Positions 1,391 to 64,000 of a DNA stretch of 64,000 nucleotides are shown piece after piece; the first letter of the stretch is position 1; the number at the start of each line of letters is the position of its first letter. A program made the translations under genes and the position numbers. A model generated the notes under the pieces. That model ran no database searches, had not been told where the DNA came from, and worked only from the letters and a program-made list of their open reading frames with translations. The DNA comes from Mizuhopecten yessoensis. Lineage: Eukaryota. Location of the stretch: the NCBI RefSeq assembly GCF_002113885.1, contig NW_018404492.1, forward strand, positions 7,111,255-7,175,254, read 5' to 3'.

Positions 1391-4300
1391 TATTGATTTT
1401 AAAAAAATGTAACAAAATACCTTACGTACATGTATATGCACCTTGGTGTGTTTACAGTTCTCCGAAAGGTCAGTTGATAAAACGATATTTACATTGGTGA
1501 CACTCTATTCAATATAGATTATTTCAGTTATTTAATCGAAACATTCTTTTTCAATAGTGTCGACCCATAGTATTGACCATATGTAGGTACGTGCTACACT
1601 TCGTTTTAAATAGCCAGACAAATCCTGTGATGAAAACTGAGCTGACGGCCTGAGGAGCATTTTATAGTTCTGGTTTATGTACTCGACTCAGCACAAAAGT
1701 CCAGTACAGTCATCCTCTTTTATTACGTTCCCAAAATAAGTCTGTAGGCACGTTTGTTGTCGGGTTTGGTATTAGTCGTCAAGTTGGTATTAGCTATATT
1801 CGACATTCGCGTTTGACAACGTATCGCACGCGCCGGACAGACGCCGGGGCATTAGTTAGCCACACCAACGCACCAACTGTTGATACCCCAGGTTACCGTT
1901 CATTACAGTAAAATCCCAATCAGTGTGTGATGGCAGACACATTGACACTATCTTCAGGTTAAAGCACCGGTCATTGATACGGGGAAACTGACATTGTATC
2001 CAGGAACACAAAACTGATTTAGTGCCGTATAAAATAGCAGCTAATCGAATCTACCGCTGATATGAATATTTGTTATAATACAACAGCACTTCCCCCTATG
2101 ATAAATATCAAAAATACGTTTTTCTTGTTTCTAGATGAAAGTGAAATTTTATAATCAAATGAAACCATTCAAGTAATTCAATAAATGGAAAAGAACAATA
2201 ATGTAATTTTATCGCAGTATTTTATAGATTGGAACCCGATTTCTCGACATACGTGTATGGCCAATAGAGTTGCTCTATCAAATTGCGATCCCGTTAGTCA
2301 CAGCCATGGAGGCACGTCTTTAGAACAAGGCTAGCACGGAAAGGCGACCGCGATGAAAAGGAAAAATGGTTTAATAGACTAGAACACGTTTCAATGGGGT
2401 TGTAATTCACTTTTAAATATCCTGAATTTTGTGTTTCCCTTTCGTGACATTATTTAAATGTAAAAAAAAAAAAATGAAAAAAAAATGTATTAGGCTGGAT
2501 CACGATCGATATGGTTAAGCAGTATGTGGAGCTTGTGTACCTTCTGTTATGAAGATGAACGGAGCGTGTAATAACACAGGATATGCTGTGAGGCTTACCC
2601 CACCAATAATGGTACGGTAATACGGACACAAAGATGCAGGTAATTTGTGTAAATCACGACAAAGCGCTTGGTCTTCTGTCGATGTCTCTGTCAAAGTAAG
2701 GGAGATTTGTACACAATATCTGATATCGTACTGGGTCGATATAGAATGTTAAAAAAACACCTGAAAACACCATTTCGAAATAAAGTATGCACGTATTTAT
2801 ATACGAAGATACAATGTAAACCTATTGATTAGCTAAAACATGGTAACATACCTTAAAACCAACCAGATCATAGCTAAAAAAAGGAAATCGTAATATTGTT
2901 CAGCCATTTTGTTTTTACATCATCTTTGAAGCTGTAATTGCCCTGTATTTTTCGTTCGCACAAGGTACACACACCATGCACATATCGTGCGCATATCGTG
3001 CGCACAATGCACATCGTGTAACGTGCGATTCTGAAATATCCGTGCGCATCCAGCTTTCTCAACAAGTCTTGTGTACTGTTAAAATGGTTGTACTTAGGAG
3101 TACCCTATAATGAGTTTATTACGGCCAAAATTGTTAAAACTTGTGTTTCATATCTTTATTTTTTTATTTTTTGGCAAAACTGACTTGCTGTACAATGTTG
3201 CCTTATTTTTCATATCTTCTGTTTAGGAAACTCACGTTTACGACATTTAGAATTTGGAAACAACTGTACGCTTAACAAGTCTGTTAAAAATGTATAACAA
3301 TCTTAACAAAGTGTTTTAATTAGTATCGAAATTGTATGAACACATTTCTTTATCGAATATAATTGACTTTTATGTATGAACATTGTACCGGTATACAATT
3401 CTGTTGACCAAAACTTGGATTTTATTCACACAACTTTTCGTCTACAATTTTCGTTTAGCACGGTATCGACTAAATCTGTGATAAATAATTATGAAGAGAC
3501 AAACAATACTTTTCAATATTTAATCTTGTATTGACCGATACCTTGATAAATGAGCGCGTCATCCGCCCCTTCTCTTTAAAGATACGAATGTACGGGTACC
3601 AACACAATTTTTTTACCCGCCAAAGCCCGCTTAAATAGAATTGTAGAAATGTATCTCAACCAGTTAGTGTTAACGTGTGATGTTTCGATGACCAGTACAG
3701 TACATTTACAATTGTACTTACCCCTACCACCTTCATCAGAAAAATGACCAGTGAAGCCTATTTAAAAATTGTGTAAATCGACGGTATATTATATATTATA
3801 ACTTGAACAGCTTTGTTTGCCATATACTGGCATAGACATTGAAAAAAAATAATCACCGAGTACATGTTTTAACTGAAGTATATCAATATATGAACACAGT
3901 GATCCCTTTAATACATTTGTATATACGGCTAAATATATTGTTTCTGTATAGCAACAAACCCTATACATGCACAAACGCATCGCCCCGCTCCACGTTTTAA
4001 GGATGAAAATGTATCGGGTTATTGACGAAGCCATGATACATTAATACAATGTCCCCACAGCGTCCTCGGAACGAATAACGTTTGTAATTACCGACATAAC
4101 CTCTTATGGACAGGTCAAGACACAGACTGTCCACGCCTGACCACCTGTCGCCTACTGATCAATATGGTCAATATGGTCAATATGACCACTCTCGATTTTT
4201 ATTGGACTAGAACTCGTCAATCGAATAGTAGCAATCTCATGATTACTACGTTTATGAAAGGATGGTTAATCAATTATAGCAATACCCGATATCACAATTC

Positions 4301-7300
4301 GCACGTCGGAACAGGCCAAATTGTCTAATGCAGGTACTTACTCACAGTTCACAATAGTGTTGTATCGGTACACGTGTAAACTTCGATACAAGCAACAAAG
4401 GATGCAGCTGGTCATTAATTCCTTAAAACAACTTTTGTTTGGGAAGCCTTTTCCCGGACAATGGACGTTTGACCATTTCCATTATCAGCGGTAAAACGTT
4501 AAAACCCTCCCACAGACGAATACATAGAGGCAACCGTATCTTTAATCATACATTTGCCTATAAAACAGGTACTCTAGGCAGCAAATAGAGCAAGTAATCT
4601 GCCAGGAACAATTAATTCGAAAAATTGGAACCATTATAGGCCGAGCATTTCCAACGGACTTCTCATCGATATCATTGATTTTCCCCTAGCGTCCTAAAGG
4701 GGTGTTTTGTGTACTCCTCTTACCGAAGGGATCTAACAGCGGTGAAAGTGTACGCCATCATGTAGTAACTTAGGTACTTTATCTCTACTACCTCCGACAT
4801 TATACACTGTCAGCAAGCACGAAATCTATTTCAATTAGAAATATCTCCGCATCCTGTTTCAAATTTCATGAAATAGACTTTTGGGGTTTTGTTGTATCCA
4901 ATTTTGTTCCGATTTCTGTCGAATGATTGAATGGTTTCAAAGAATAAAACTTGTTTTTTTATTAAACGTCACTCACATTTTTCATTTGTCAAACAATGGT
5001 ATGTATTTGTTACACACAACCGGTCAGCTGTTAAATTCTCATTTCTACTCTTAGTGTGGAGTTCAATCTGTTATACGCAAAAATCAATCTTAAAATCAAA
5101 TCTTAAACGTTCTTTCCCAAATTTTTGGAGGAAGAGACGAGTGTTAAAACACATGGCGTCTATCGACTAGAGAAAACCAGTAAACTTGTCTTCGACATAT
5201 AACTCCTCGTAGATCGTAGACTGATCTACAAAAACATGTAGTCTTAAACATATATCTCAAATGTTTTCTTTATCAACAAAATGTCGCCCCGGATTACACT
5301 GTCTGTCACTGTATATAGAAAAATCCAGCTATCACCGACACACTGAGTGTACAACGTCTCCTGTAAGACTGGCTATAGCCGCTAACACGATCATGTGTAA
5401 AGCTTTCATCAATCTTGATATACATGTACATGTTGTATATATGCTATCCGTGTACCGTTCGGTCAGTGTTTTATGTAAAGTATGCAAGTTGATAGTCACT
5501 GAAATTAAAAAAAAAAAAAATGTCGTAAAAGCAGTGTCTTTCCGAATTGAATCATTGTAGATCTAAAAAACCCTCCCACCGACCAATCCCTTAGTATGTG
5601 AGATTCCATCTGTTACATACATGTAGAATGTAGGACATTTTGGTCAATGGTGTAAATGGCTTCTTGTTAAAAAATGTCACTGATGACATTTATATTGTTA
5701 ACAAGAAAACGAGGAGTTCATTGTAGGCCTACCTAATTACATGGACAATGTCTCCCTATGCCATGTATACTGAAACCGCCTTACGTGGCAGATTTTAATG
5801 TGTCTGAGTGTAACAAGTAAAATAGGCAAACGCACTTTTGCCGTATTGTGAAAGATCGATAATTAAAACTGTGGTAACTGAAGCAGATACCTTTACAAGT
5901 CCGACAAAGGCTTTATCTACAGTGGGATTATAACCATATTTGTAATTAATGCCCGTATTATCTCCAGTCACTAGTCTCACACAAAAACTAAAAAAAAGAA
6001 AAACTTAGATTATATCAAATATATGTTAAGTGGGAAGACGTGAAAGACCTGACGTGGACTACAGTTGTTTGTTTGGGGGTTTTGCCAGGCATTTCAATAT
6101 GTATAAGTGCAACGAAATGGCTCCAATCCCTCAAACAAACCCCCAAAGCTGAGTCTATGTGTTTCTTCAGGTGCCTAGCATCAGACGTCTGTGACAGTCC
6201 TGCAGTGGGATATAGCAAGCGAGATGTATTACGGAATATCGTTTTCTATCAGGCTATCGATGATGATCATACTCAATAGACTTGTCGACTTGTAGTGTGT
6301 CTCTAAGCTACCACGATAAGATGCAGATGATTTCTGTCTTGAAATGGCGTGTAGTGTAACCCTCTCTTCACCATATCAAACGTCTTATCAAGTACGGATT
6401 TATTGTGTGGAACATGAGAATGCTGCATTTACTTAGTAGAAAAGAAATAATCGAATTTTCAATTCATTCTTTCTATATACGTGTATAAAAAAAAGAGCGG
6501 TACTGTATTTTGTACGTCGATAATAAAGTATCGACGAGAATTAATTCTAATCCAAAGTAGAAAGTATGTCCACATTTATAGGACTAAGTTATCTAGCCTG
6601 TCTCATTCTCCATACCCACAATGAGCCACATCGATCGGAAGCCGGGGTGTATACGGCCTACACACGCACCCTCGTCATACTGAGAGCGACACGGTGCCTT
6701 TATTGGTCGTGGGAAGTCGTTCAAAAAAGATCTGACAACGCCAAGACTGTTGTAATCTGATTTCTCCCTGAACCTGCATAATACATTTAAAAGATGAAAA
6801 AGCTAAAACATTTGTTAAACCGTGAAAGGCCCCTCGTCTAGTTGGAAGCCCATTGAGCATATAACTCATAATGCACGTTAATACCAAACGAGTCATACAA
6901 CCCCCGAGAGTATTTGAATATTTTCTCAATTCGATTAAGCGGTTATGGGAACAAAGCTTTTGAGTCTCCTTGTAAGATTTGATAAAATTTCTGTTTATTT
7001 TGAAAAACTAAAACAGGCTTTATATATGCGTGGCCCATTGATCCCAACAGACACTGGAAATTCACGGGTTTACTAAATTAGTGTTTATCTCCAGCTAGCG
7101 CAGTAGCAGTCCCCCTTGTAATTGTTGACTTACTTCTACGGCAAATGAATCGAACCAACTGGCCCCCGAAGCAGAATCACGTGCAACAGCGGCCGGTAAT
7201 AATGGCCTCTGGCTAGTGAGGCCACTTTGGTCCAATTTCACTACAGAACGGATGGTTGTTAAGTATATAAATACACACCAACAGTACACCCAATCAATCC

Positions 7301-12034: not shown

Positions 12035-12611
12035 TGAGTCCTGTTCAATTCCAAACTGAGATCCGAAAGTGTCAGAACATGAACACTGGCAAATAAACAG
12101 ATAAATATCGCAGGGATTGATTGAAATATCTTAGATTCAGTAGTCAATTTGTTAGCGCTTAATAGCATGTTTGAGAAGCTTTATCGCGATCACAGAAGGT
12201 GGGATTTCTGACTTCACCCACCATCGATCAATGTACGGCCCGAATGTCGACTGTCAGACCCGCAATCTGCAAACGTGATGGATACATGCAGCTGACATCT
12301 CTATAACACACAGTTGCCTTTAATATCGTATCGTCATCGGAAGAGATTACCGGCTTACACACATATATGAGTCGACTGCTAGTCCACTGCCTGTGCATCC
12401 GGCCAGTGCGGTCAGTATGCACGTGACGTTAACGTTGTAGCGGTGTATCATTTTTGCGTGTCAACTGACTTCTCGATAACGTATTCGTATGCATGTACAT
12501 GTATCTGTGTGTTTACTGTATTCGTTTGTGTACGTGAATTTTCATGAGATCTGTTGACGAAGATAGACTCTATCCGTTTTTGAAAGCCCAGTTCAGACAA
12601 ATCAAATAAAG

Positions 12612-12677
12612 CACACGCAACATGAGTACTTCGTCATTGACACACACGCAACATGAGTACTTCGTCATTGGCACACG
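12612..12677. repeat. Short tandem duplication (cacacgcaacatgagtacttcgtcattg x2)
   Basis: Direct ~31-bp repeat visible in sequence. Confidence 0.8.
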
Positions 12678-15600
12678 ATAATGAACACTGCTCTATTTAT
12701 CATATGTGTCATTGTGCTAAAATATCCGATATGCACCAATGTAAAACATGGTTTTCTAAGCCTTAATTACAAAACGAACACTACGAAATGATTAACATTA
12801 TGTAACATCACTGCGGCATGTTTAAATAATGCATGTTTTCTATAACGAGAGAGTATTAGGCTTTCAGCGACCGGCCTATATCGGGGCATTTTGTCTAAAG
12901 CATGAAGTCATTGGAAACCTCATGTCGTCGGCGCGCTGACAGGCTTTCAGATTCCTGTACAGATATGTAAATTAACTCCAATATTTATTATGCAGCACTG
13001 ATTGAAATTTCATTTTTAATACAATTTTCATCCGTTTTGTAGTTGAATTCAAGCTAACGTTATGACCGAATTAAATATTTTATTACTTTTTGCAGTCAAT
13101 CAAAAATGTCAAGCTCCAGTGCTTGCTAGCTCTAATCGTAAGGAATTAATTTTGTCGTCAGAACAACGCGCGTTTAGAGAAAATGATAGTAAATTGTTAT
13201 AATTCCAAGAAATGAAGCAAATGTTTGACAACATCCTTTTATATTCCTTATTCCTTGCGTACCAAAATAAAAAGCGAATAGATCAATCTGTTGGGTATAC
13301 GATCGTTGATCAGACAGAGAGCCATTAATTTGTACGATGTATATATATATATATGTATTTAGTGATTATCATCCGTCTTATTCCTAGACTCTCGAGTAGC
13401 CTGTACACGTAAAAGCCCATTCATAATACGCACACGGAAACATTACGCTTAATGTTTAAAACGATTTGTTGTGTTAAGACTCCAGCAATAGCGACAACAC
13501 TCTTTTACGTTGAGATCGTCAACGCACTCTTTACAAGAAGGATATCTGTCATTTTCTTTGTCGCACTGGTTGTTCAGTGATGCTGAAAAGCTTGTGTTTT
13601 TATTCAGTTTTTGTTAGGAGCAATTGCAAAGTACATATGTACCAGTGAAACCTGGTGAAACTTTAACACAAAATGAGAATTCGGGATTGGGATACAGATA
13701 CTGAAAATGAAAGCCTTCATCAATCAGCCGCTGTTGCTTTATAGAATTTTCCGTCCTAGTTCTGATTGACACTGCTGGGATCAGATTCAATATTTCATTT
13801 AAATGTTTATTTTTTTACTACAACAGGTGTGTTATAATATCAGGCGTTGAAACGAGTTAGAATTGTTCAATGTAAGGGATATTAACGTTAACGTTTAACT
13901 TGTGTCATATAAGAGAAGTTCAATAAGTCAAACTTTCAGAGGATTATTCTCTGATCTAGCTAAAAATGTCCTAAGTTCTTATTTAAACCAAATTCAATAT
14001 TTGCAGAATTTATAATTTCAAAATCGTATAGCAACACAAAAATTGCATCGCCGTCGTTGTTGCTAGGATACGGTTTTGATTACAAGGCAACAAGCCTTAT
14101 TTAACAACGTTGTTTTAACGATCACGTGATTACATTTTGTACAACAAAACACATCTAAAGCATTGTAAAAGCTTTTAAAGTTAATTTAGCTCAAGGAAAA
14201 CAAAAACAGTAAGCATGCCACAATCTCGGCAATGTGTCATACGTGCTGTATCTGTATACACAATGGCATTTGTGATGTGTGGGTTTACGATTGACGAGAT
14301 GTGTCGATTTATTTGTGACGAATTTGTTCCCTTAACGATACAATTTGCAATACATAATGCTTCTCCGGCCCTACTTTCATACTATTTACAAGAATGTTAT
14401 GGCTGTTTCAGGTAGAAAATTAAAAGCTTAAGCCACAACAGAGAAGGCTGTTAATGAAGCGGAAACATTGATACCGTCAAATGCAAACGGATAGCACCCT
14501 TGGTGTTCACTTAGCCCTGGAAACTAGTAATCTTACATTTGCATCTTAACCATTACTGATTTGCTTAATACTTAAGTATTTCCCTACAGATTAATTTTAG
14601 CACCAAATATTCATCAGATGACTTTTCATGTGCAGGTCTTTTAAACACAACTGAAGATGGATTTCTATGGTAAAATACAGCAGAATCATGTCGGTTATAC
14701 TGCATTTTGTATACATTGGAAGTAAGTACAAGATTAACACACATTTTTGAAAAGTATTTTTTTTATCATTTCTTCTTTCATTTTTTTTTCGTACTTCTTG
14801 TCTATGGACCATGTTTTGGGTACCTAAAGCTGCAGTCTCGGAAAACAATAATTAAATTTAAAAAAAAATAGAATGTCGTTTACCGTGAACAAAACAGTGA
14901 TTATCTAGGGCATGGCTTCGCCCCGGTTTATGTAGGGCATCGTTATTTTTTGCCCAAAGTGTTTATGGGGCTCCTTCATTTCTCGCCTCTAGTATTGTAG
15001 GACTCCTCATGTTTCGCCTCCGGTTTTACGTGGGGCTCAATCATGTATCTCCTTGGTGTCCATTTTATCGGCTTTGTGTTCGGACATGCTTGCCGTGTGT
15101 CGATATAATACTTTTTTTTCTATTTTACTTCAGAAAATTAGTTGATGAGAGCATGAGCGTCAGCGAAGATGACGTTGTACGTATCCCCGACCTGCACACG
15201 GGTTTACGTGATTGTATTTACATCTTTTGAGAACATCGTCTTGATCACATAATGATATTTAAAAACAAAATATACAGTGATTTTGGAAACATTCCTTTTA
15301 TGCCAAAAGTTCATTAGGGATAAGGGAGTATCGATCGTCCATCTTTCTTACAACACCCGCCAGCCAAATTGACAATGTGGGGATGCAATCAACTTAAAGA
15401 CAAGAAGCATGGAACAAAATGACACGGAACAGATTAAACCTGCCATGAGAGACAGCGCAGAACATTTTTCCTGCGAATATAATTTTTTATCATTAGAAAG
15501 ACTAGAACCTGGAGACAGGACTAATTTTTGAGCATGCACAAGGGATAGATGACAAAGTCTATTATTATCTCAAAACTCACATCCTGTCCAAAATGCCGAG

Positions 15601-52154: not shown

Positions 52155-52193
<39 letters not shown>

Positions 52194-52194
52194 N
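52155..52194. repeat. Poly-C tract (39 C followed by an ambiguous base)
   Basis: Homopolymer about 14 bp left of the CACTA end; its length is likely assembly-uncertain. Confidence 0.85.
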
Positions 52195-52227
52195 TTCCGC
52201 CACCACACACTACTGCCAAGATTGCCC

Positions 52228-52808
52228 ATTACAAACCCATCAAAAAGCCATTATTTATACTGCCATTACTTTTGTACACCTTTAATGGCCTCTAAAGTAA
52301 TGGCCAAACCCATTACCTGACCATTACTTTCCCATTAAAGTTTCAATTAAGTAATTGCCATCACAAAATAATGGGCCAATTATTAGATTTCAATGTAATG
52401 GGCATTAAAATTTCTGACCTAATGTAATGACCATTACTTTCGAGGTAATGCATTTTTAATGGGCATTACTTGTTTCAACAGTAATGCCATTACTTTGTGG
52501 AGTGTCCATTACATTTCGCCCAAAAAGTTGTAATGGCCATTAGAGGTGCACAAAACTAATAGACCATTGCAATAAAGTACATTTTAATGGCCATTATTGT
52601 TTTTAAATAATGGCCATTACTTTCAAAAATTAAAATTATTTATGGGCATTACATTTTTTACAGTAATGGCCACATTTTGTGATGCATAATTGTAATGGCC
52701 ATTACTTTTACAAAAGTAATGCTATATATTTTTAAGGGCCATTACATGAGGTGCATGTAATGATCATTACTTTGCACATAAAATGTATAATTATTTAATG
52801 CCATTACT
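52228..52808. repeat. CACTA left subterminal repeat array ((G)TAATGGCCATTA(C) palindrome and CCATTA half-sites)
   Basis: Many perfect and near-perfect copies, e.g. gtaatggccattag, taatggccattatt, taatggccattac, taatgggcattac. Confidence 0.9.
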
Positions 52809-52821
52809 TATATGGTCACAC

Positions 52822-53664
52822 AAGTGTGGTCCTGAATAATCAATTTAATTAGTCGACGTCTGGTTGTTTGTCTCTGAAAATCGATTAATCAATCTTTGTT
52901 TTCCATGATTGATTATAGTTTGACTAATTAAGTATTAACAAAAAATAAACTCGGATAGTTACTGTTATTACCGCCGACAGCGAGTTGTTCCTTCTTGGGC
53001 AAAACAAATTGACCGAACGTCCCACACAACGACAACGCTGATTGGCTAGCTGGTCCACCCGATAACCATCAGAACTTGCGTTTCAATGGAAATGCTGCAT
53101 GGCTCAGTCAGTGAGTGACAATATGCATGGCAAACCAGGACAATGCATGGCAAACCAGGACATTCCGGAGATTAAACTCTATGATCATCCAGGTGCTACC
53201 GATTTAAACGTTTGGAAGGTATTGTTCCGTCTTAGCTGGATATAAATAAAACGCTTTGTCGAAAGTTTGGGTTATCTTACAAATAAAATGTTAAGTTTGA
53301 CTGCAGGGTGTCATCAGGTGAATGCCAATCCATCGCGGCATTTCTGAATACGAGATGCAGCTGTCACACTCACAGCATAATGGACCTTGCAAACATCATC
53401 AATTTCATTTCCAAATACATATTTTTCAATAATTATAAGGTTCCGTCAACAAACGTATTGTTTTTGTTTGAATGTTGTGCGTTATTAGCGAAATTCTCTA
53501 ATGTCAGGTTTTCCGCAGAAACGAAAGTGAAAGTAGATTTCGGAAATCGAATATAACCTTAAATTACTGAATTCAAATTCAATTTGATCGATCATTAGTC
53601 GATCATCAGTCACTTGATTGGAAGTGATGATCGAGTATGAATTTACAAGCGATTGCCAACACTA
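52822..53664 (+). mobile_element. Possible decayed internally deleted hAT-type element nested in the CACTA left arm
   Basis: Right end cgattgccaacacta (revcomp TAGTGTTGGCAATCG), TCGA-rich subtermini at both ends, and BED-finger-like remnants (..GATDLNVWK; LDINKTLCRK.GLSYK*) at ~53150-53285. The left TIR is weak and no TSD is seen. Confidence 0.4.
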
Positions 53665-54551
53665 GTAAATCTTGTAATGACAATTTTTTAGATACAATTA
53701 CTTATTGGTATGCAAATTGGGTGTGCAGTCTGATTTAACAGACCTGTGGATCCTGGGATGGAACACATAGCAGTTCAACCTGACCGTCAAGTTTGTATTC
53801 GCCTTGAATCTTGGCAGATAGTGTAGTCTATCACAATCCAGGATATTCTATTTATACTTTTTTATAAAAGAAAAATGTACATAAAAAAGCTTGTCTTGTC
53901 TTTTATTTTAAGAACACAGTACAGTTACACTTGAAACCAATAAAATAATTCTCCATACGGTATTAATGTCTTCAGATAACTTTTTCATATAATCCTATGG
54001 CAAATATTGAAAATGGTCATTTCTGCAGAGGTGTGCTATTGCAGAGTTTACCTTGGATACTGTGACCGTAAAACTGGGACTAAGATCTCTTTAAACATCC
54101 ACATGACCTTGATCTAGCCTAGGGTCATGCAACCTTGAAAATGGAACTACAGTTTCAAGTATTCTGTACATGATTTCCAACAACTCTCCAATGCATATGC
54201 CTATTCAAATAGTCTCAGACTACCGTTTTAGCGAAAATGAGATTCGTAATTTTCAAATAGTCATGTTACCTTGACCTTTGAAACCGGGTCAAGGTATTCT
54301 TCACATATTTTCCAACAAACTGCTAGCCATTGCACTGCTCAATGTTTGCAACCAAGTTTTAAGGTCATCTGCATTAGAAAGTTGTTGGAAATCTTGTGAC
54401 GAATACTTGGACCCAGTTTCTAGGTCACAGGTTTAAAGGTCAGGGTCACATGACCGTTTGAAAATTAGGAACATCATTTTGTCTAAAACGGTAGACTTTT
54501 TAATTATAGGGCATAATAATGCATTAGAAATTTCTCCCCAGAAATTTAAGA

Positions 54552-54770
54552 AGGCATGTCGGAATCGAAGTCACAGCTGACATTTTTACAACTTCATAAT
54601 CTTTAAACATTAATTTATAGTATTTGGTGCTAATACCCATTTTAACAGTTTTATACTAAACTATCTAAGGCATGTTTTTTTCACAAATGAAGGCGTGACA
54701 AATATGGAATTTATTCAGGAATTAAGGCACGTCATTTCCGAAACATATGCATGTCATTTCTGACATGCCT
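54552..54770. mobile_element. MITE nested in the CACTA element (Kolobok-like AGG...CCT ends)
   Basis: TIR aggcatgtcggaa / ttctgacatgcct. TTAA follows the right end; the left flank ttaaga is degenerate. Confidence 0.5.
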
Positions 54771-55346
54771 TTAAGACCGTCCTGGGGAGGATAGTGTAAA
54801 TTTTCCCCCAAACACCGAAACAATAATTAAAATGTACTCCAACTTGAACTACAAAATCATAAAATGCTATATACAAGTGCACGTGTTGGTCAAATTTGGG
54901 CAATCGATTACTCTCTAAAGAGTAGAATATTAGTATTACTCGCAATTAGGGCCTACAAAAAAGTGTTGTTTCCCCTTCCTGACCGAGCATATTTTTTTGG
55001 GGACATTTTCAAAGAAGAACTACAGTAATCAAGTGTGAATGTTTCTTACAAATAACCATAAAAAGGGTAAGTTTTTACTAAAAAATTGCCACAAACCTTA
55101 ACCAGGGACCCACAGGCCTAAACATTCAAATTAAAAATATCATGCACGCATGGAAAGGCAAGTCTTATACCAGGTGTACAACTGTCAGCCTGTCATTATA
55201 CATGCATGTAATTATTTGTCAACATACACCTTGGTTCGGACGGCCAGGGACCAGATGATTTCCTTTGAAAAAAAAATGCCTTCCAGCTGGAGTGGGATAT
55301 TTTTAAATGGAATATATAGACCCTTATATTAATGATAATTCATTAT

Positions 55347-56944
55347 TTACTGATCATCATAAATATAACTTTGAATTTTTTTCTTTAGAAGGTTTCCAAA
55401 TTTCTCCCGACTTACAACTGATAGGCATCCAAATTTTCCCAGTTTAGGATCCAGTTTTAAAAGTTCATTTTCTTTCGGTACCTCCCAGATACAGTAACGC
55501 ATGTCTGGATTTACCTCTATATCTGTGGAGCTAAGTCTCAAGTTGTCTGTGTTATCTGCTACAACTCTGCACTCTTCAGTGGTCATCTTGCCATCGGTAT
55601 TTAACTTTCCACAACTCTTCACTGAGTTCCTTACTAGAAAAGCAGTTTCTGTGACACATTTGACTCCCCAGAATTTTTTTTTGTTTGCCCACTCCATTAG
55701 AACAAATGACCGAAACTGAATCTCGCGTTTTGAGCACTTAGATTCATTGTTGGGCAGGGTTTGTTTTTCATTACGTCGTTTCTTTTTTTCTATAACTGGT
55801 AAATCTTCGTCATTACTGATATCAATGTGTAATTCATGATCATCATCCGCTGCAGCAGATCCTTTGGGTTGGATTGTTTGTAGTCTCTCTGGGGATCCAT
55901 CATTCCTAGGCCTCTTCACATTTTTTGATTTTGATGGTAGATGATCAACATCAATCGAGCTCGAGGATTGCTTATTGGCATCAGAATCTGTATCAGTAGA
56001 ACATGAACTTTGTTTAAACATTTCATCCAACTTCCTGCTTGTGTTTGGCGTAGCCTTCTTTTTCTTTACTTCCACTTTTTCAAGTTTTTTTGTCCAGAAA
56101 AGTATCATCTGTTTCACACCAGCATTTTTTATAGTTGTTGCACCATCTGGTGAAACAGCTGGCAAATCTACATCTATTTTCGCGTCCATGTCTTTACTTT
56201 TCAAAACAACATTTGAATACATATCGTCTTCCTTACCTAGAAAGATACCCGTTCCTACTATGACACTGGTACTGTCACAACTGTGTTTCAATTTTACCAA
56301 ATCACCTGGTTTCAAATCACACAAACCCAAGTCATTTTTTTTACGCTTTTCACTTAATTCAGCTTTGTGTTGTGCGAGGAATTTCCGTCTTTTTCCTGAA
56401 TTCAAGTCTTTTAAGTACTTTCTTCTATTTTGTAAATGTTCTCCGACTCGCCTCCAAATTTCTGACCTTTTTGATTTGAGGGCAGGGACATGGTTTTCAA
56501 TAATTGTATGGAATTCTTCTTTTTTTCGACTTGTGATGTCTTGTAATGTTATGGGATTTTTCCATAGCTTTGTTGCTTTCATTGTATCCTTCATCAAGCT
56601 ATTAAAATATGTTTGAGCAGAATTACTTTTCGTTCTGATAGCTTTCTTTCGTAGCATTTCATCTACATTAAATTTTGTTATAGGTGTCAGGATGGAACTA
56701 ACACTACTGGTCGAAGATTTCTCAGTTTCACTACTACTGGTATCAAGATCTGTAGTGCATGAAGTCTCGGTGGTTTCTGATTCTAAGCCTGGTGATTCCT
56801 TATCTGCGACTTGATCCATGTAATCTGCTCCCTGTTTCAAATGTATTAGGTTTCGTACAATCCTCCGATCACCGAAACTTTTGAAAAGGTCCTTGATATC
56901 CCCTTCAGTGAACGTATATATATCTTCAGCTGTAATTTGATTTT
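55347..56944 (-). CDS. CACTA accessory (TnpA-like) protein, main exon: SAM-like N-terminus, basic helical region, TNP1-like motif
   Basis: The frame of the 497-aa ORF stays open 34 codons upstream of its TTG (NQITAEDIYTFTEGDIKDLFKSFGDRRIVRNLIH) up to acceptor ttttctttgcag|AA at 56945|56944 (phase 1). It lies inside the CACTA ends and is K/R-rich with NLS-like KKKRR. Confidence 0.85.
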
Positions 56945-57807
56945 CTGCAAAGAAAATGTATAAAATATTGTCAGGATATGTAGTCCCCCGGAAGGTGATT
57001 TTTTAAATAATGAACTACAGTATGTCTCATTTAGTCTCAACAGGGTTTTTGCCCCTCATTTTTATCAATTCAGGGAAAATTTCACTGGTATATTAGTCAT
57101 AACGGAATTCCAAATCTCAACCTAATTGGTTAACAAATACAAAAGTTGTCTGCTTTGAGACAACTGAAAATTTGCGTCTTGACGTTCCATTGACGCCATA
57201 GTTTATAGTAAAATTGACAATATATTAAGAGTATCGGTACGTTTTATGCCCTCATTGTGAATCCCAGTAAAAAGCAACCAAATCTGGTTGCAACTTGCCT
57301 AAATTTCATTTGATTTTGTTTGGATCCATATTTTTTTAAACCTGACCTTTTTTAAGTTAAATTTTCTACCTTTGAGATAAATTTGGACATAATTTCGATG
57401 TTTCACGCTGATCTGCCTCTGATTTGACACTTCTGGTTCTCCCTACCATCGATTCGAAAATATACCGCGATACAAGAGTAGTTACGTCCCCTGGATTCAC
57501 CGAACCGGCGGGTAGCAGACGCTCGCAAAGTATTGAATGGTTTTTCTTACAATTAAATGTATGTCCTCAAAGGTTATATATTTGTTTATATCCTGATGTA
57601 AAAGTTTCTACTGGGGTGTACACTCGTCCCTCGTAATTTCGCGGAAATTGTTAAGTACCGCGATACAGTAGGGCTAAACATGGATTTGAACATTTTTCAA
57701 ACTAAAAGTAAAGATCTATGCCAATCTCAACATGCATTTAATTACGGAAACACACAGATCAGTATTGTTACAGATTTGAGTACGGCCTGCAAACGAATGA
57801 TACCAAC

Positions 57808-57847
57808 CTTCCATCGCAAGTTTGCCCTCCGACGAGAGATTCTCCAT
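57808..57847 (-). CDS. Accessory gene exon 1 (MENLSSEGKLAME + G)
   Basis: ATG at 57847 (alternative in-frame ATG at 57868), 40 nt, donor GAAG|GTTGGT at 57808|57807 in phase 1. Joins exon 2 as G+AA=Glu, giving a continuous SAM-like sequence; intron is 863 bp. Confidence 0.62.
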
Positions 57848-57868
57848 CGTAATATGAATGTTCTGCAT

Positions 57869-58008
57869 CCTCAGAATCCCGCGAAAGTACTGCAGAGCGG
57901 AAAAGGCGCAACCACGTGATGTTTGTTTTGAGATGTGATGTTGTGCGAGATTTGAATACACAGCTTCCGGTATGCCGGCAAGGTTTCAGCAACAACGTTA
58001 ACGCTCGT
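57869..58008. promoter_or_regulatory. Putative bidirectional promoter between the divergent accessory gene and transposase
   Basis: Short gap between inferred divergent start codons, CpG-containing, with palindromic E-box CACGTG (57913-57918) and ETS-like CTTCCGG (57964-57970). Confidence 0.5.
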
Positions 58009-58193
58009 ATGCCACGGCGAAAAATAATATGTCCTTGCTGCATATGCAGATCATGTTTAGATCCTGTAGATCATCGCACTGCAAAGTCTCACATCTCGAA
58101 ATATGGCATACAACATTCGACATCTCCGGGTAAAACCGTGCTTTCGCATCATAGCGGGAAAGTTGCAAATCATGGCGGACAAGTTGCAAAAAA
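58009..58193 (+). CDS. Transposase exon 1 (Cys/His transposase-associated N-terminal domain)
   Basis: MPRRKIICPCCICRSCLDPVDHRTAKSHISKYG has the CPCxxC...H..YG pattern of CACTA N-terminal domains. Donor AA|GTAAGT at 58193|58194 is phase 2 and joins in frame (AA+A=Lys, then ATG 59799) across a 1604-bp intron. An alternative in-frame ATG is at 57919. Confidence 0.8.
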
Positions 58194-59164
58194 GTAAGTA
58201 AAGTGTTGTATATGGGATGATAGTTTGACATCTGTCCCGGGTTGGGTACTGTCAAATTTTTGGGTACACCCATGTCAAACGTTGGATGCATTTAAAACCA
58301 TTTTTCCGAATTTTCGTTCAATTTTGAAAGATATGAGCGTCGACAGAATAAAGACGGACAATTTTGAAAAATACATTGTAATACAGAAAAGGTTTTCTCC
58401 CATACCAAGTGGCAGTGTGTGTTTTCTCACTCTCAGCTCATTAGTAAGCATTCCCTACTATTGGTAAACATTTTTGTTTCTTAACATATGTCGGTAAAAA
58501 ACACCTATACATAGCTATATAGGCATATATATATATGTATTTGAAAGTTGTAGGGACACGGCTGTAAGAGTTACTTTTGAAAAGTTTCAATGTCATTGGG
58601 TCTCATCAAATATTGTTTCTTACATATTGAAAGTTACAGTATTTGACTTATTTTTAAGTAATAGCCTGAATAGTCAAATATCACACAAACTTTAATTTGA
58701 GATGCATGCTCTGTTCAACTTTTTGCATAGCTCCAGATCTAGAGGATCTCAGGTGGGCCTCTTGTTTTTTAAAAAAATCGTTGAAAATTTTAAAACTTTA
58801 ATTTCTCAACCTTGTTACAAATTATTTAGATGGTTCATTTTATCTATTTCAGAACGACACAGCTTCCCATGGCCACTGGTCCTACTAGTCCTTCTGTTTT
58901 GGAATTGGAAGACTCAGAAGTTGAAAGGTATAACAATATTTTTCTGACATTATGAAGATGTACTTCATCTGTCTGCGACACATCGGTTTTCCAGACTTTA
59001 CTTCGTTTCAATAATATTTGACCTCTGTAGACCTATTTTCTACTAAATTGTCGTAGGATCATGAAAATTGAGCTTTGTGATGAGCAATGGATGTCAAACT
59101 TATGCAATATTATTTTAATCAAATTTCCAGTTGGGGCAAATTGAACAACAATAATACAGCCTCT

Positions 59165-59330
59165 TGTTAAATATGGTCATAAAGCATATCAAATCGAACA
59201 GGATGATGAGAACTGTATTTTGCAAGACCATTTGTCACCATAGACTGAAATAGGGGAGGGGAGTCGGGTCAAAATAATTTGTTTTTAAATATATCAAATC
59301 AAACAGGATGATGAATACTGCATTTTGCAA
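59165..59330. repeat. Two diverged satellite/HINE-type monomer fragments in the transposase intron
   Basis: Repeated atatcaaatc(g/a)aacaggatgatga motif with an intervening gggtcaaa, similar to bivalve HINE internal repeats. Confidence 0.4.
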
Positions 59331-59434
59331 TTTTCCCTGTACACTGTATATAAATATGTATTTACAAATTTGCACTGCAACTTATTTGGATGTCAGGACT
59401 CGACAAACCTGACATATATGCATGTAGATGATCG

Positions 59435-59742
59435 TACATGAGTGTCCATGTAATATTGGGATTTATTAAACAAGTTAAATAATTGTATATGTCACGAGCC
59501 TTTAGGCGATTAATTTATTTAACAAGTTTAATAAATTCAATATTACATGGACACAAGTGTAAAATTCTATTTATCACATAACTCATAATTATGAGTAAAT
59601 AGGCCAAAAAACTCAAATTATCTCCCTAAAGGAACGACAATTTTCTTTGATGGCTTCATTCAATTAGGACGTCACAATGCCTTTATGACACAGTGTGGCT
59701 TACGATATGTATGACATGGAAAATGAGCCAGTTATGTAATGA
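59435..59742. mobile_element. Hairpin-ended (Crypton-like) element nested in the transposase intron
   Basis: Palindrome 59435-59561 centred on CGAGCC-TTTA-GGCGA; IR tttatcacataac (~59570) / gttatgtaatgaa (~59731). Confidence 0.55.
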
Positions 59743-59797
59743 AGGAATCTTAATATACATTACAATTGTCTTAAAATATTTCCTTTAAATTTTTCAG

Positions 59798-62624
59798 AAT
59801 GGATTCTGATGATAGCATGGTGGAGGATACTTTCTCAGGGTCAGATACCGGTACCAATGTCAATGTTGACAACGAACTTGAAGATGCAGATGGGGCTGTT
59901 AGTTCATCTGTTCTGACTCCATCCAAGCCTGAGGAATGTGATGATCAAGATGTAGATTCAACTGTGTCTTTGAGTGATGAGGAATTTGACATCGATGAGG
60001 AATTTGACACCGACGAAAATGAAGTAGTTAACAATTACAACATTAGTGATACCTGGTCATTTACATATGACAAAACATTGTATACTAGTGGAATAGCTTG
60101 TGAAATGATGCCAGGTTCGAACATATCAGTGTTGCAATGGTTAGCTATGAATTTTTATACATTCTCATCACACTCTATGAGCAAAAATTCTTTTTCTTGC
60201 AACCTAAACATTCAGAAGATATTACATACCTCTAACAAAGACTGCTCGATGTCATTGGAGTTGCCTTCAAATTATCGCAAAGCAAGGAAAATGGTGGACC
60301 AATATAGAGTAAAGAAACTCAATTTCAAATGTTGCGTTAATGACTGTATAGTGTACAAAAACAATGCAGGTACTAATCCGAAGTGCCCAATGTGCGATTC
60401 GACTAAAACGAAAAATTTTGTTTATCTACCAATTGCACCAAGAATTGCACGAATTTATGGTGAAAAGAACTTGGCTAAATTGATTCAGGTACATGGACAC
60501 AGATTGGAACATAATTTAAAACCCGACATGTGGGATATTCAAGACTCACCTGCATGGCAAGAAGTGTATGGTGAGGATGGACATTTTAAAGGGGACCATA
60601 CAGGGTTATCCTTTGCATTTGAGGCAGATGGTGTTAGCCCATACCACAACCTGAGAATTTCATATTCAATGACACCTATAATGTTGACTTTGTTGAACCT
60701 TCCAAGAAACATTCGAAATCTGTTTGGGAACATTTTCTTAGTTGGTATAGTTCCTGGAACGGGTCGGTCAGAAGCATTAAAATTAGATCCCTATCTGGAG
60801 ATTATGGTCGATGAACTACTTTATCTTACAGAATGTCGGACGATTGACAGTTACAAAAATGCTCCTGTAAGTGTGAAACTCAAAGTACTTCTGTTTGTTC
60901 TTGACTACCCTGGACTATCCAAAGTATTTTCTCAACACGGAAGTGGCAGCTTAGCTGTGTGTCACTGGTGTTTCGTCAGAGGACAACATTGCAAACATCT
61001 CGACAAGGTAATATATTTGTCGAATAGGTCATACTTGGCCTTCAGTGATCCATTACGCTTGGACAATAAACATTTTCTCTGTAAGAAAACTGACTTTTCT
61101 GTGGCACCCAAAGAAAGAAAGAAAGATGAAGAGAAGAATTTCCGAAATGCTTATGATACTGCGGACAAAATGGTGAATAAAAAGTTAGTAGCAACAGCAA
61201 CAGGCTGCAAGAGTTCATATGTACTAGAAAAGCTCCCAGGTCATGATAGAGTAAAGGAATCAATTCCAGATGCATGCCACACAATTAAGGATTTAGTCCA
61301 GAATATTATGAATTTGTTGGTGAGAAAGAGTGATGTGAAAAAAATATCTGAAGCAGAATTTAATTTAGGTAGATTATCAGTGAACATTACATCAGACAAC
61401 CAAATACAAACCGATCATGGAATAAACAACAATAATCATAAGAAACGAAAGACATGTTCTGAGATTGATCTACCATATGTTCTTACAAATGATGAAATTC
61501 AGCGTGCCGATGAAAGAGCCAAGAATATTCGTGTTCCACACGGTTTCGGTTTAAAGCCCTCTCCGTTCATTTCGAAAAACAGAGGTGCTTTGAAAAGCCA
61601 CGACTGGAAGCAGATTGCTACACACGGGATTCTTAAATACTGCTTACGTGGGTGTCTTTCAGAAGATTGTAGAACTACATTGTTTACATTATTGGATAGC
61701 ATTTCACGGATTTGTTCTGAATATGTGTCTATTGATGACTTGGCTGAAATGGAATGTGAACTAAATAGAGCACTTGCCTTCCTAGAGCGAGATTTTCCAT
61801 TGTCACTGCAAAACATAACGACCCATATTCTTCACCATATAGTAAATGGCATAAGGCGCTACGGACCTGTATATGGAACATGGATGTACAATTTTGAAAG
61901 ATTTAATTCATGGATATGTAAGAGAGTCTTCAATAAACGTCACCCAGAAGCAACAGTAATGGAGACATTTGCAGTTTTTGATTGGTGTAATTTTATGATT
62001 TCAACAGGAAGGATGCCCTCCAATATTGTAGCTATGACAAATCAGTTTAATGATGATTTGGAATGCCAAGAAATAAAATGTGATGGTGATCATGAACAGG
62101 CATACGAGTCTGGTATTGAAATCTGTTTGACTGGCAGGGAGTTACAGTTTTTACACCATGCACTTGCAAAAGAAGATCTTGTGTGTTGTGGCAACTGCAC
62201 TATCAGGAAAGCTTCGTCTCACAAAGTGACACACTCAGGAACTGGGCGTTGCATATATTATACAACTTCTGCTAAGTCGGTGCGAGCATCAGCTCTAACA
62301 AAGTCTTGTTATGTTTGTTTTGAAACCACTAGAGGAAAACCAAACAGGAAGTTGTCTACAGGTCAATTTGTGAATTTTGGCATCATTTTAGCTTTCTATC
62401 ACCATATAATAGAAGGTGGTGTACAAGCCACAGTGTCTTGTGTAGAAACATATACCAATGCTGAATGTGACAGTACCAAACTGTGGAAATGCCCCATTGA
62501 CTCCGAGAAGTCTAAGCTCTTCATTCACGTCAAAAAATTATCCAAACCGCTTGTGACTGCAGAAGAAGATGGTTGTTTATGGTTCTTGGATGGTGGGAGG
62601 TTACCTTTTCACAGTTCAATTTAA
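59798..62624 (+). CDS. CACTA TnpD-like DDE transposase, main exon (941 aa from ATG 59799; ~1003 aa with exon 1)
   Basis: Uninterrupted ORF with CMC/CACTA motifs: CCVNDCIVY..CPMC, WDIQDSPAW, EADGVSPY (first D), LLNLP, LDYPG (second D) followed by CHWC, DACH, LKSHDW, HILHH..YGP..WMYNFERFN (E). Preceded by acceptor ttttcag|A (59797|59798). Confidence 0.93.
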
Positions 62625-62978
62625 CTTGGTGAGGCCAAAAAAAATCTTTGTTTGGCATTGACGGACTAACTGGAGCTGGGATTGCATATTTTATATGCAG
62701 AATTATAAGGATTAAGATGAATGATTATTTTCTGTTATGTAATGGACCTGTTTGATCTTTTCTCTGATTTTAAAATTGATATGGATGTATGCAATATCAT
62801 TACAAATATATAATGATCACAATATGTGTATTGGGTTTTAACCAACAAATTCATCAAATGAAAATGAATTCGTCTGAAAATTATATTAAATTGTCTTTGA
62901 TTCGAAATGTATATATAAAATGTGTGTACAAATGAATGTTATAGATATATATTGTTATTTTTTTGTTTTGGTCACCAG

Positions 62979-63120
62979 GGCCCGAGATCATGAAACAATC
63001 TTAGACTTAAGTCTATTTTAATCTTAACTTGAAACTTAAATAACATCAGAATTAATCATCGTAACTATAGTTAAGTCTTAAGTCTGAATTAAGGCTAAGA
63101 TCACTTCATGATCCCAGGCC
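62979..63120. mobile_element. ~140-bp MITE nested in the CACTA right arm (GGCC termini, PIF/Harbinger-like)
   Basis: Left ggcccgagatcatgaaacaatcttagacttaa versus revcomp of right ggcctgggatcatgaagtgatcttagccttaa; CAG lies to the left, and the TSD is not preserved on the right. Confidence 0.6.
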
Positions 63121-63237
63121 AAAAGCTAATCAAAGTCTGTTGACTGGCCTGAAACATAAAGTAGCAAACAAACATTGCTAAACAATGATACAATGAGCAT
63201 TAATACATTAATTTAAGGCCAACAATTAGTAGTTGTC

Positions 63238-63712
63238 ATGGCCATTACAAGAAAAATGTAATGGGCATTACATAAAACCAATAATTAGTAATGGTCCTTA
63301 CACTGGAATCAAAAAATGTAATGGGCATTACATAAAGCCCTCAGTTAGTAATGGCCATTACATTAAGATAATAATTTGTTATAGTCATTAAATGGAAAAT
63401 GTAATGGCCATTACATAAAGCAATAATTAGTAATGGCCATTACAATATGATTAGCTGAATTATAATGGCCATTACAACCATGGATAGTGGCCATTAATAA
63501 ATATGAAACATGAAATAATGGCCATTATATTTTTCATGCCCATTAAAATGAAATAAGTAATAGGAAATAAACTAAAATTTGGGAAAATAATGGCCATTAC
63601 ATTACTAAACATGAGGTTTGTCAAAAAAAAAGAAACGAGAAATAATGGCCATTTGTAATGGAAACTGTGTTTTTAATGGGTTTGTAATGGGTTTGTAATG
63701 GTATTTTAATGG
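63238..63712. repeat. CACTA right subterminal repeat array (same palindromic motif)
   Basis: Many copies of (g)taatggccatta(c) and taatgggcattac, then 11-bp gtttgtaatgg half-site repeats next to the TIR. Confidence 0.9.
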
Positions 63713-64000
63713 CTTTGCTGTGCAATAGTGACATATCAAAATCTACCAAACGTTTACATTGTTTTAAAGTTCAACAATTAACTATTCAAATTACTCAGAG
63801 CCGCTGTATTAATCCGGAATGATTTTCGGTGGGGATTACAATGGTATGAAACACTTGCTGATTGGGTAATTTAGTTGTGTGAGTCCTATATAGATTGTTT
63901 ACAATAGGTAAAGACAGGGAACATATACTCACCTTCCAACATGGACATGAATCGGATGTGAACTGGTCACTATCAAAGTGTGCGTAACGCAATATAGATT

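Follow-up and report, generated by a model that had tools for sequence, protein, structure and literature searches.

A CACTA accessory gene of Mizuhopecten yessoensis encodes a two-exon product with a truncated SAM domain and belongs to a family linked to transposases in molluscs and a sea anemone

To our knowledge, the accessory proteins of CACTA transposons are understood only for maize TnpA. This protein binds to 12-bp repeats in the subterminal regions of its element and draws the two ends together (summarised in PMC1636069). In animals, the Schistosoma element SmTRC1 encodes SmTRC-PrA and SmTRC-PrB, non-transposase products of a CACTA transposon which were proposed as stand-ins for TnpA and have no detectable relatives in other animals (PMC1636069). 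The present analysis concerns a gene on the minus strand (55347–57847) of a 64,000-nucleotide stretch of AT-rich animal DNA from the mollusc Mizuhopecten yessoensis (assembly GCF_002113885.1, contig NW_018404492.1, forward-strand positions 7,111,255 to 7,175,254), which is termed the window in the following. The gene resides in an intact CACTA/EnSpm DNA transposon, consists of two exons and encodes an accessory protein predicted to combine a truncated SAM domain with three further domains, here termed B, C and D. The family to which it belongs accompanies CACTA transposases in molluscs and a sea anemone. The gene model and the domain assignment, taken jointly, are very likely correct.

In the window copy, exon 1 starts with an ATG at 57847 and extends over 13 codons plus one base to the donor G/GTTGGT at 57808/57807 (slashes within these motifs mark exon borders). 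The acceptor ...ttctttgcag/AA at 56945/56944 leads into exon 2, which is open as far as the TAA at 55349–55347. Joining the two exons yields a product of 545 amino acids (13+1+531). The parts of the gene are the following.

57808–57847, minus strand: coding part of exon 1 (ATG to donor), M-E-N-L-S-S-E-G-K-L-A-M-E plus the first base of a split Glu codon; SAM helix 2
56945–57807, minus strand: phase-1 intron of 863 nucleotides, GT...AG; position and phase common to paralogs, the Argopecten homolog P0015 and the host-type homolog P0012
55347–56944, minus strand: exon 2, 531 codons plus stop; open frame with 64 six-frame matches in the genome and 81 protein relatives
57848–57868, minus strand: possible N-terminal extension from an in-frame upstream ATG, adding M-Q-N-I-H-I-T; possible stub of SAM helix 1

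Comparison with related copies supports the junction. A six-frame comparison of exon 2 with the same genome (988-Mb assembly, 82,659 contigs) gave at least 64 matches, ranging from 97% down to ~25% identity. The acceptor (polypyrimidine-CAG) occupies the identical codon position in 14 paralogs, and the frame stops a few codons upstream of the conserved N-G-I-S motif. Ten of these 14 loci, representing ~7 distinct lineages, carry a short exon 480–1250 nucleotides upstream, as does the window copy; it ends in L-(S/T)-x-E-G-x-x-A-(M/I)-x followed by G/GT, i.e. with the same phase-1 split of a Glu or Asp codon, and starts with ATG in nine of the ten (the C5462 copy has no ATG). The paralogs sharing the intron, at least eight in number, are 25–50% identical. 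The two exons and the phase-1 intron recur in the NCBI model XP_069109798.1 of the Argopecten homolog (P0015), and the NCBI annotation of the host-type homolog XP_069132590.1 (P0012) likewise includes this intron. The junction 57808/56944, which a first-pass annotation of the window had proposed, is thereby established by comparison, short of RNA proof. The product of ~545 amino acids given there reads as claimed, with the reservation that the true start codon may be the in-frame ATG at 57868, 21 nucleotides upstream, from which 552 amino acids would be translated. The frame from this upstream ATG is intact in the diverged C4556 copy, although six nucleotides are deleted between the two ATGs, and exon 1 counted from 57868 is close in length and pattern to exon 1 of P0015; the added residues may correspond to a stub of SAM helix 1.

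A decaying open reading frame (ORF) or a wrongly joined exon pair is highly improbable. Some copies are indeed degenerate and contain stops, and the ratio of non-synonymous to synonymous substitutions against close copies (0.39–0.62) is only moderately below 1, a value that is uninformative because two of the three partners are dead copies. These points are opposed by the 531-codon open frame, which lies in an element with intact ends, a target-site duplication and an open transposase ORF, and by the conservation of four domains across paralogs, genera and phyla as well as of the intron.

Two further observations were made on the accessory ORF. A TTG-started ORF of 213 amino acids (55975–56616, plus strand) runs antisense within exon 2 over the conserved coding frame and is most likely no gene. 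In the C76631 copy (L047, G000:C76631:5000-14999; 97–98% identical), ~2.9 kb (about 4046–6964) split exon-2 residues 1–86 from residues 224–531, which may reflect an insertion, a rearrangement or an assembly problem; the transposase match of this copy spans residues 1–261 only.

The N-terminus of the accessory protein is, as judged from profile comparison and structure prediction, a truncated SAM domain. Its exon-2 part maps as follows.

56808–56942, minus strand: SAM helices 3–5 (exon-2 residues 1–45); hhalign to the homologous domain, predicted local distance difference test (pLDDT) 84–89 in the exon-2 model

Relatives with a longer N-terminus (from Argopecten, Littorina, Batillaria, Haliotis and Argonauta) provided a full-domain profile (alignment A5). 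The exon-2 N-terminus of the window family (residues 1–39) aligns with positions 31–69, i.e. helices 3–5, of the 71-residue full domain (hhalign 99%, E 3.8e-18), and exon 1 corresponds to helix 2 (N-L-S-S-E-G-K-L-A-M-E-E versus G-V-S-S-E-G-V-D-S-V-R-G in the host form). Searched against PDB sequences, the A5 profile hit SAM chains in register in ~27 of 32 matches, at marginal E-values of 0.014–1; these chains comprised SARM1, ANKS3, ANKS6, neurabin, BICC1, L3MBTL3, Sfmbt, Shank2 and LFY among others. AlphaFold2 modelled the full homologous domain (P0016 residues 8–78, A5) as five helices with a pLDDT of 93.4. The top 50 Foldseek matches of this model in the PDB were nearly all SAM domains (template-modelling score, TM, 0.7–0.82), and an independent VIA search returned Z-scores of up to 10.6 (SAM domain of DGK-delta; root-mean-square deviation, rmsd, 1.6 Å over 66 of 68 residues); SAM or PNT domains made up 46 of its top 50 matches. 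The five-helix bundle of ~65–70 residues typical of the SAM superfamily is thus present in the homologous P0016 domain; the window protein covers helices 2–5 only, and helix 1 is predicted to be absent from it, or to persist as a seven-residue stub at most.

The most conserved SAM residues are the acidic E-E-D-I-x-D of helix 4 and the basic (K)-D-R-x-x-x-R-K at the start of helix 5. It is in these two regions that polymeric SAM domains have their two contact surfaces. Self- or hetero-association via mid-loop and end-helix surfaces is not universal among SAM domains.

The exon-2 protein was modelled from a 57-row alignment (A6), which yielded three confident globular parts and disordered linkers. 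In order, the protein comprises the truncated SAM domain, an acidic Ser/Thr-rich linker, domain B, the barrel domain C, a disordered basic linker and domain D.

56679–56807, minus strand: acidic Ser/Thr-rich disordered linker (residues 46–88); pLDDT ~40, Ser or Thr at 21 of 43 positions, isoelectric point (pI) 4.1
56328–56678, minus strand: domain B, basic, four-helix, presumed DNA-binding (residues ~89–205); alignment A2, pLDDT 95–98, pI 10.5
56055–56327, minus strand: domain C, predicted small SH3-like beta-barrel, KOW/Tudor-like (residues ~206–296); pLDDT ~96, VIA Z 5–6.4
55728–56054, minus strand: disordered Lys/Ser/Asp-rich linker with a basic K-K-K-R-R cluster; pLDDT 36–46 and composition
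55350–55727, minus strand: C-terminal alpha/beta domain D with E-W...Y-x-G...N-C-x-K-P...N-P-D (residues ~406–530); pLDDT 88–96, alignment A7

The Ser/Thr-rich linker, basic helical segment, G-D-L-V-K-L...I-L-F-W segment and C-terminal domain that had been picked out in the first-pass annotation are all present and conserved among paralogs, and the basic helical segment, there considered a possible DNA-binding domain, takes shape as the four-helix domain B. This best-conserved part of the protein ends in a near-invariant L-Q-N-R-R-K-Y...G-K-R. It has neither a Pfam match nor a PDB sequence match, and its VIA matches to PHR2, ARR1, Reb1, BEND3, BANP, BEND6 and Bsg25A (Z 5.1–6.1) fall in the chance range for helical bundles. 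In ESM Atlas feature searches, domains B and D both scored at chance level (0.82–0.83). DNA binding is plausible because domain B has a pI of 10.5, with 31 Lys and Arg among 117 residues, and is the most conserved part; it is best regarded as a new domain that probably binds nucleic acid. Domain D has no PDB sequence or Pfam match, and the structure searches hardly sampled it.

Domain C has no Pfam match; its weak structural matches suggest an SH3/KOW/Tudor-like barrel. VIA superposed it on UBE2O, the KOW domains of Spt5 and NusG, Tudor and PWWP domains and the C-terminal domain of retroviral integrase, i.e. on many SH3-like families (Z 5–6.4), and Foldseek with the 531-residue model yielded weak SH3, KOW and CAP-Gly matches (E ≥0.2). 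A chromatin-directed factor is conceivable on this basis, in which the SAM domain and a Tudor/KOW-like barrel would anchor the transposon or its transposase at particular chromatin or modulate silencing of the element, rather than pair the ends. The closest structural matches of the SAM domain (Sfmbt/Scm, L3MBTL3, SAMD1 and PHC3) are of Polycomb type, domain C resembles barrels of Tudor, PWWP and chromo-like type in addition to KOW, the host form of the family (see below) occurs without a transposase, and maize TnpA also regulates element promoter and methylation (PMC1636069). The barrel matches, however, are weak and widely spread, an aromatic cage was not demonstrated, and the strongly basic domain B together with the dense arrays at the element ends fits direct binding of element DNA more simply. 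A chromatin role is therefore regarded as unlikely.

The segment now assigned to domain C had initially been likened to TNP1-like proteins of plant En/Spm elements. This likeness was not sustained: the segment has no Transposase_23 match and models as an SH3-like barrel. Pfam searches with the domain alignments and 34 relatives gave nothing above threshold, the exon-2 protein hit none of the Pfam families at E≤10, and matches to plant TNP1 (Transposase_23, PF03017) and TnpA (Transposase_24, PF03004) were absent for the exon-2 protein at E≤10 and for the 34 relatives at E≤1. Membership of the plant TNP1 and TnpA families is not supported at these cut-offs. In favour of remote homology with the plant accessory lineage, an ESM Atlas shape search with the whole model recovered plant CACTA proteins with DUF8039 (PF26133) in five of ten family rows, some of which also carry Transposase_24 or Peptidase_C48. 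These shape matches are weak (TM 0.16–0.26, rmsd 7–8.5 Å) and were obtained with a 531-residue multi-domain model. In addition to the missing Transposase_23 and Transposase_24 matches, the separate, divergent gene of the window contrasts with maize En/Spm, where a single transcription unit is alternatively spliced, and such a remote kinship is rather more doubtful than the chromatin role.

The intact element around the gene spans ~52208–63730 of the window (~11.5 kb). Its ends read CACTACTGC (left) and CACTATTGC (right), each bordered by ACA as 3-bp target-site duplication. Assignment to CACTA/EnSpm is based on the CACTA termini, the 3-bp duplication and the TNP2-type (Transposase_21) transposase. 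The palindromic 12-mer TAATGGCCATTA occurs 19 times with at most one mismatch (0.29 expected), all matches lying within two subterminal arrays.

52205–52216, plus strand: left target-site duplication ACA and terminus CACTACTGC; read from sequence
52396–52744, no strand assigned: left subterminal array of the palindromic 12-mer TAATGGCCATTA; 12-mer count
59799–62624, plus strand: transposase ORF, 941 amino acids, divergent from the accessory gene; Pfam Transposase_21 1.6e-21, DUF4218 3e-11
63236–63654, no strand assigned: right subterminal array of the 12-mer TAATGGCCATTA; 12-mer count
63722–63733, minus strand: right terminus CACTATTGC (minus-strand reading) and target-site duplication ACA; read from sequence

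Directly left of the target-site duplication, a run of C with one N (52180–52194) possibly marks an assembly join beside the insertion.

An exhaustive HMMER profile search with domain B (A2) over 1.84 billion representative proteins retrieved 81 relatives, 59 of them below 1e-10. They include proteins from bivalves, gastropods, cephalopods and cnidarians, the closest public ones being from Argopecten irradians, and all are termed 'uncharacterized' or are misnamed. A word-index protein search with the whole of exon 2 gave no match, low-complexity words having probably swamped the query, and the exon-2 ORF product had no exact counterpart in public assemblies. On at least 17 contigs of the M. 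yessoensis genome, transposase paralogs (40–60% identity) are arranged head-to-head with accessory paralogs. The same pair is found at two annotated loci in Argopecten and at one in the sea anemone Exaiptasia diaphana. The predicted role as accessory gene of a CACTA element is borne out by the intact element and by head-to-head pairing in three genomes. In the Argopecten element of the closest homolog P0041 (L050, JAYEEO010001003.1), TAATGGCCATTA / AATAATGGC motifs are located near both ends (about 2350–2690 and 12530–12710). The P0041 accessory protein is only ~32% identical overall although the 12-mer is shared; conservation of the site thus far exceeds that of the protein.

Some relatives differ in architecture or naming. 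At the Exaiptasia locus (L051, LJWW01000027.1, 7081–13030), a Transposase_21 gene stands head-to-head with a gene encoding domains B and C without a clear SAM domain, which is named 'DNA ligase 1' in GenBank (KXJ26706.1), apparently by annotation error. Haliotis rubra XP_046547783.1 (P0001) contains two tandem copies of domain B (residues ~120–215 and 503–598).

The best explanation overall, held with moderate confidence, is a two-exon CACTA accessory gene with a product of the order SAM-B-C-D that serves array binding and end pairing. In the mechanism envisaged, domain B would bind element DNA, most likely at the TAATGG half-sites of the subterminal TAATGGCCATTA arrays, and the SAM domain would make DNA-bound molecules associate with one another. 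The resulting nucleoprotein arrays could coat and pair the two element ends and recruit or position the transposase, which would render the accessory protein a functional analogue of maize TnpA without sequence kinship. Synapsis of the ends through SAM oligomerisation, as first suggested from the sequence, is plausible; binding and bridging in this specific form is a tentative proposal.

Several points weigh against this explanation. The fold class of the SAM domain, claimed in the first-pass annotation, holds by profile and by structure of the homologous domain; what falls short of the claim is its completeness (helices 2–5) and its Pfam score. Pfam SAM models such as PF00536 and PF07647 did not match the window exon-2 protein at E≤10, and the best scores of relatives, each in a single member, stayed below threshold (SAM_1 0.071, SAM_2 0.19, SAM_LFY 0.015). 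The SAM fold was modelled on a host-type homolog (Argonauta P0016) and not on the joined exons of the window protein. With helix 1 missing, a stable, polymerising SAM domain is not assured. Cnidarian relatives show no clear SAM domain, which is therefore not essential to the family. Domain B had no significant match to a known DNA-binding fold in sequence, feature and VIA searches. No observation ties the arrays to the accessory protein rather than to the transposase, and junction and start codon rest on sequence comparison.

Some of these points would also agree with a vestigial SAM domain, inherited but deprived of helix 1 and no longer oligomerising, with the protein acting as a monomeric or otherwise dimerised DNA-binding cofactor. 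Exon 1 comprises 14–21 codons in the transposon copies versus 26–27 in the host gene, no SAM domain is recognisable in the cnidarian relatives, and dimers held together by another domain could recognise palindromic sites. On the other hand, the segment is strongly conserved among paralogs of 25–50% identity, with D and F invariant and with the D-R motif, its helices are modelled confidently (pLDDT 84–89), and the copies have kept exon 1 and the phase-1 intron. Loss of function of the SAM domain is considered about as unlikely as the chromatin role, and array binding with end pairing through the SAM domain is retained as the preferred explanation.

The family also includes a host-type form, consisting of a full five-helix SAM domain, a long disordered linker and domain B followed by the stop, i.e. 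without domains C and D. It is represented by P0012, P0016, P0025, P0037, P0038 and P0084 from bivalves, gastropods and cephalopods, and by one copy in the M. yessoensis genome (L028, G000:C76554:69048-74383). The Argopecten host-type gene is chromosomal; its neighbour is a galactosyltransferase gene, and no transposase lies within 10 kb of it. As in the transposon gene, a phase-1 intron lies inside the SAM domain, which relates transposon and host genes at the level of gene structure. As to the direction of transfer, sequence comparison would accommodate domestication as well as capture.

The sole vertebrate match is P0004 (XP_069486739.1), isoform X3 of the KIAA1958 homolog of Ambystoma mexicanum. 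KIAA1958 carries two alternative Crypton-derived C-termini (PMC3212892). In P0004, the usual KIAA1958 N-terminus continues, at residues ~440–575, into a stretch resembling half a SAM domain and a full domain B in place of the Crypton-derived DUF3504; this part may represent a third alternative exon of transposon origin or an insertion that is mis-annotated. A far-reaching scenario would regard the SAM-B(-C) protein as an ancient CACTA accessory lineage, with a DUF8039-homologous barrel predating the plant-animal split, a SAM domain polymerising along the arrays and repeated domestication (mollusc host gene, axolotl KIAA1958 exon). It is judged less likely than either the chromatin role or a vestigial SAM domain, and only slightly less doubtful than remote homology with the plant proteins.

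In the literature searched, no SAM domain is described in CACTA proteins, and nothing was found on DUF8039. What is new is a CACTA accessory family assembled from different parts, conserved across molluscs and cnidarians and with relatives among host genes. Animal CACTA accessory proteins, earlier reported as unconserved orphans (PMC1636069), are thus represented by a conserved family linked to the transposase in two phyla. The family offers a concrete and testable model of end assembly for elements that combine 9-bp termini with long arrays of short sites. A mollusc transposition assay could naturally be reconstituted from the intact window copy, whose ORFs are open and whose ends match and are flanked by a target-site duplication, and the intron-sharing host-gene relatives provide a clean case for studying gene exchange between transposon and host.

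Compared with known systems, the parts of the protein have different affinities. Domain C superposes on KOW, Tudor and SH3 barrels (Spt5, NusG, TDRD3, PHF19, UBE2O and the integrase C-terminal domain; rmsd 2–3.4 Å over 50–68 residues), and its G-D-x-V-x-L...G-x-G-I motif is reminiscent of KOW; unlike these families, it scores in the range of common arrangements and lacks a sequence-family match. The full-length domain homologous to the N-terminus resembles the solved SAM domains of DGK-delta, Scm/Sfmbt, Shank3, L3MBTL3/SAMD1, SARM1, PHC3 and BICC1 (Z 8–10.6, TM 0.7–0.82), from which the accessory protein differs by F-x-D-R in place of G-x-R in helix 5 and, in the transposon copies, by the missing or reduced helix 1. 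The mollusc host genes (XP_069132590.1 of Argopecten, XP_070179948.1 of Littorina and the LOC115212324-like gene of Argonauta) share SAM domain, domain B and the phase-1 intron in the SAM domain with the accessory gene. They differ from it by the full five-helix SAM domain, the long linker, the absence of domains C and D and their chromosomal location, the transposase-free surroundings having been seen in Argopecten. From SmTRC-PrA and SmTRC-PrB the present family is set apart, going by their published description, in being shared by bivalves, gastropods, cephalopods and cnidarians. With TnpA of maize En/Spm and the ORF2-type proteins of plant CACTA elements, the accessory protein has in common that it is a non-catalytic second CACTA protein and that arrays of a 12-bp motif lie inside short CACTA termini; array binding and end pairing, as performed by TnpA, are for the accessory protein proposed by analogy. 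In contrast to maize TnpA, to which it has no detectable sequence similarity, it is encoded by a separate and divergently transcribed gene rather than by an alternatively spliced transposase transcript, and would be built from a SAM domain, a new basic helical domain and an SH3-like barrel.

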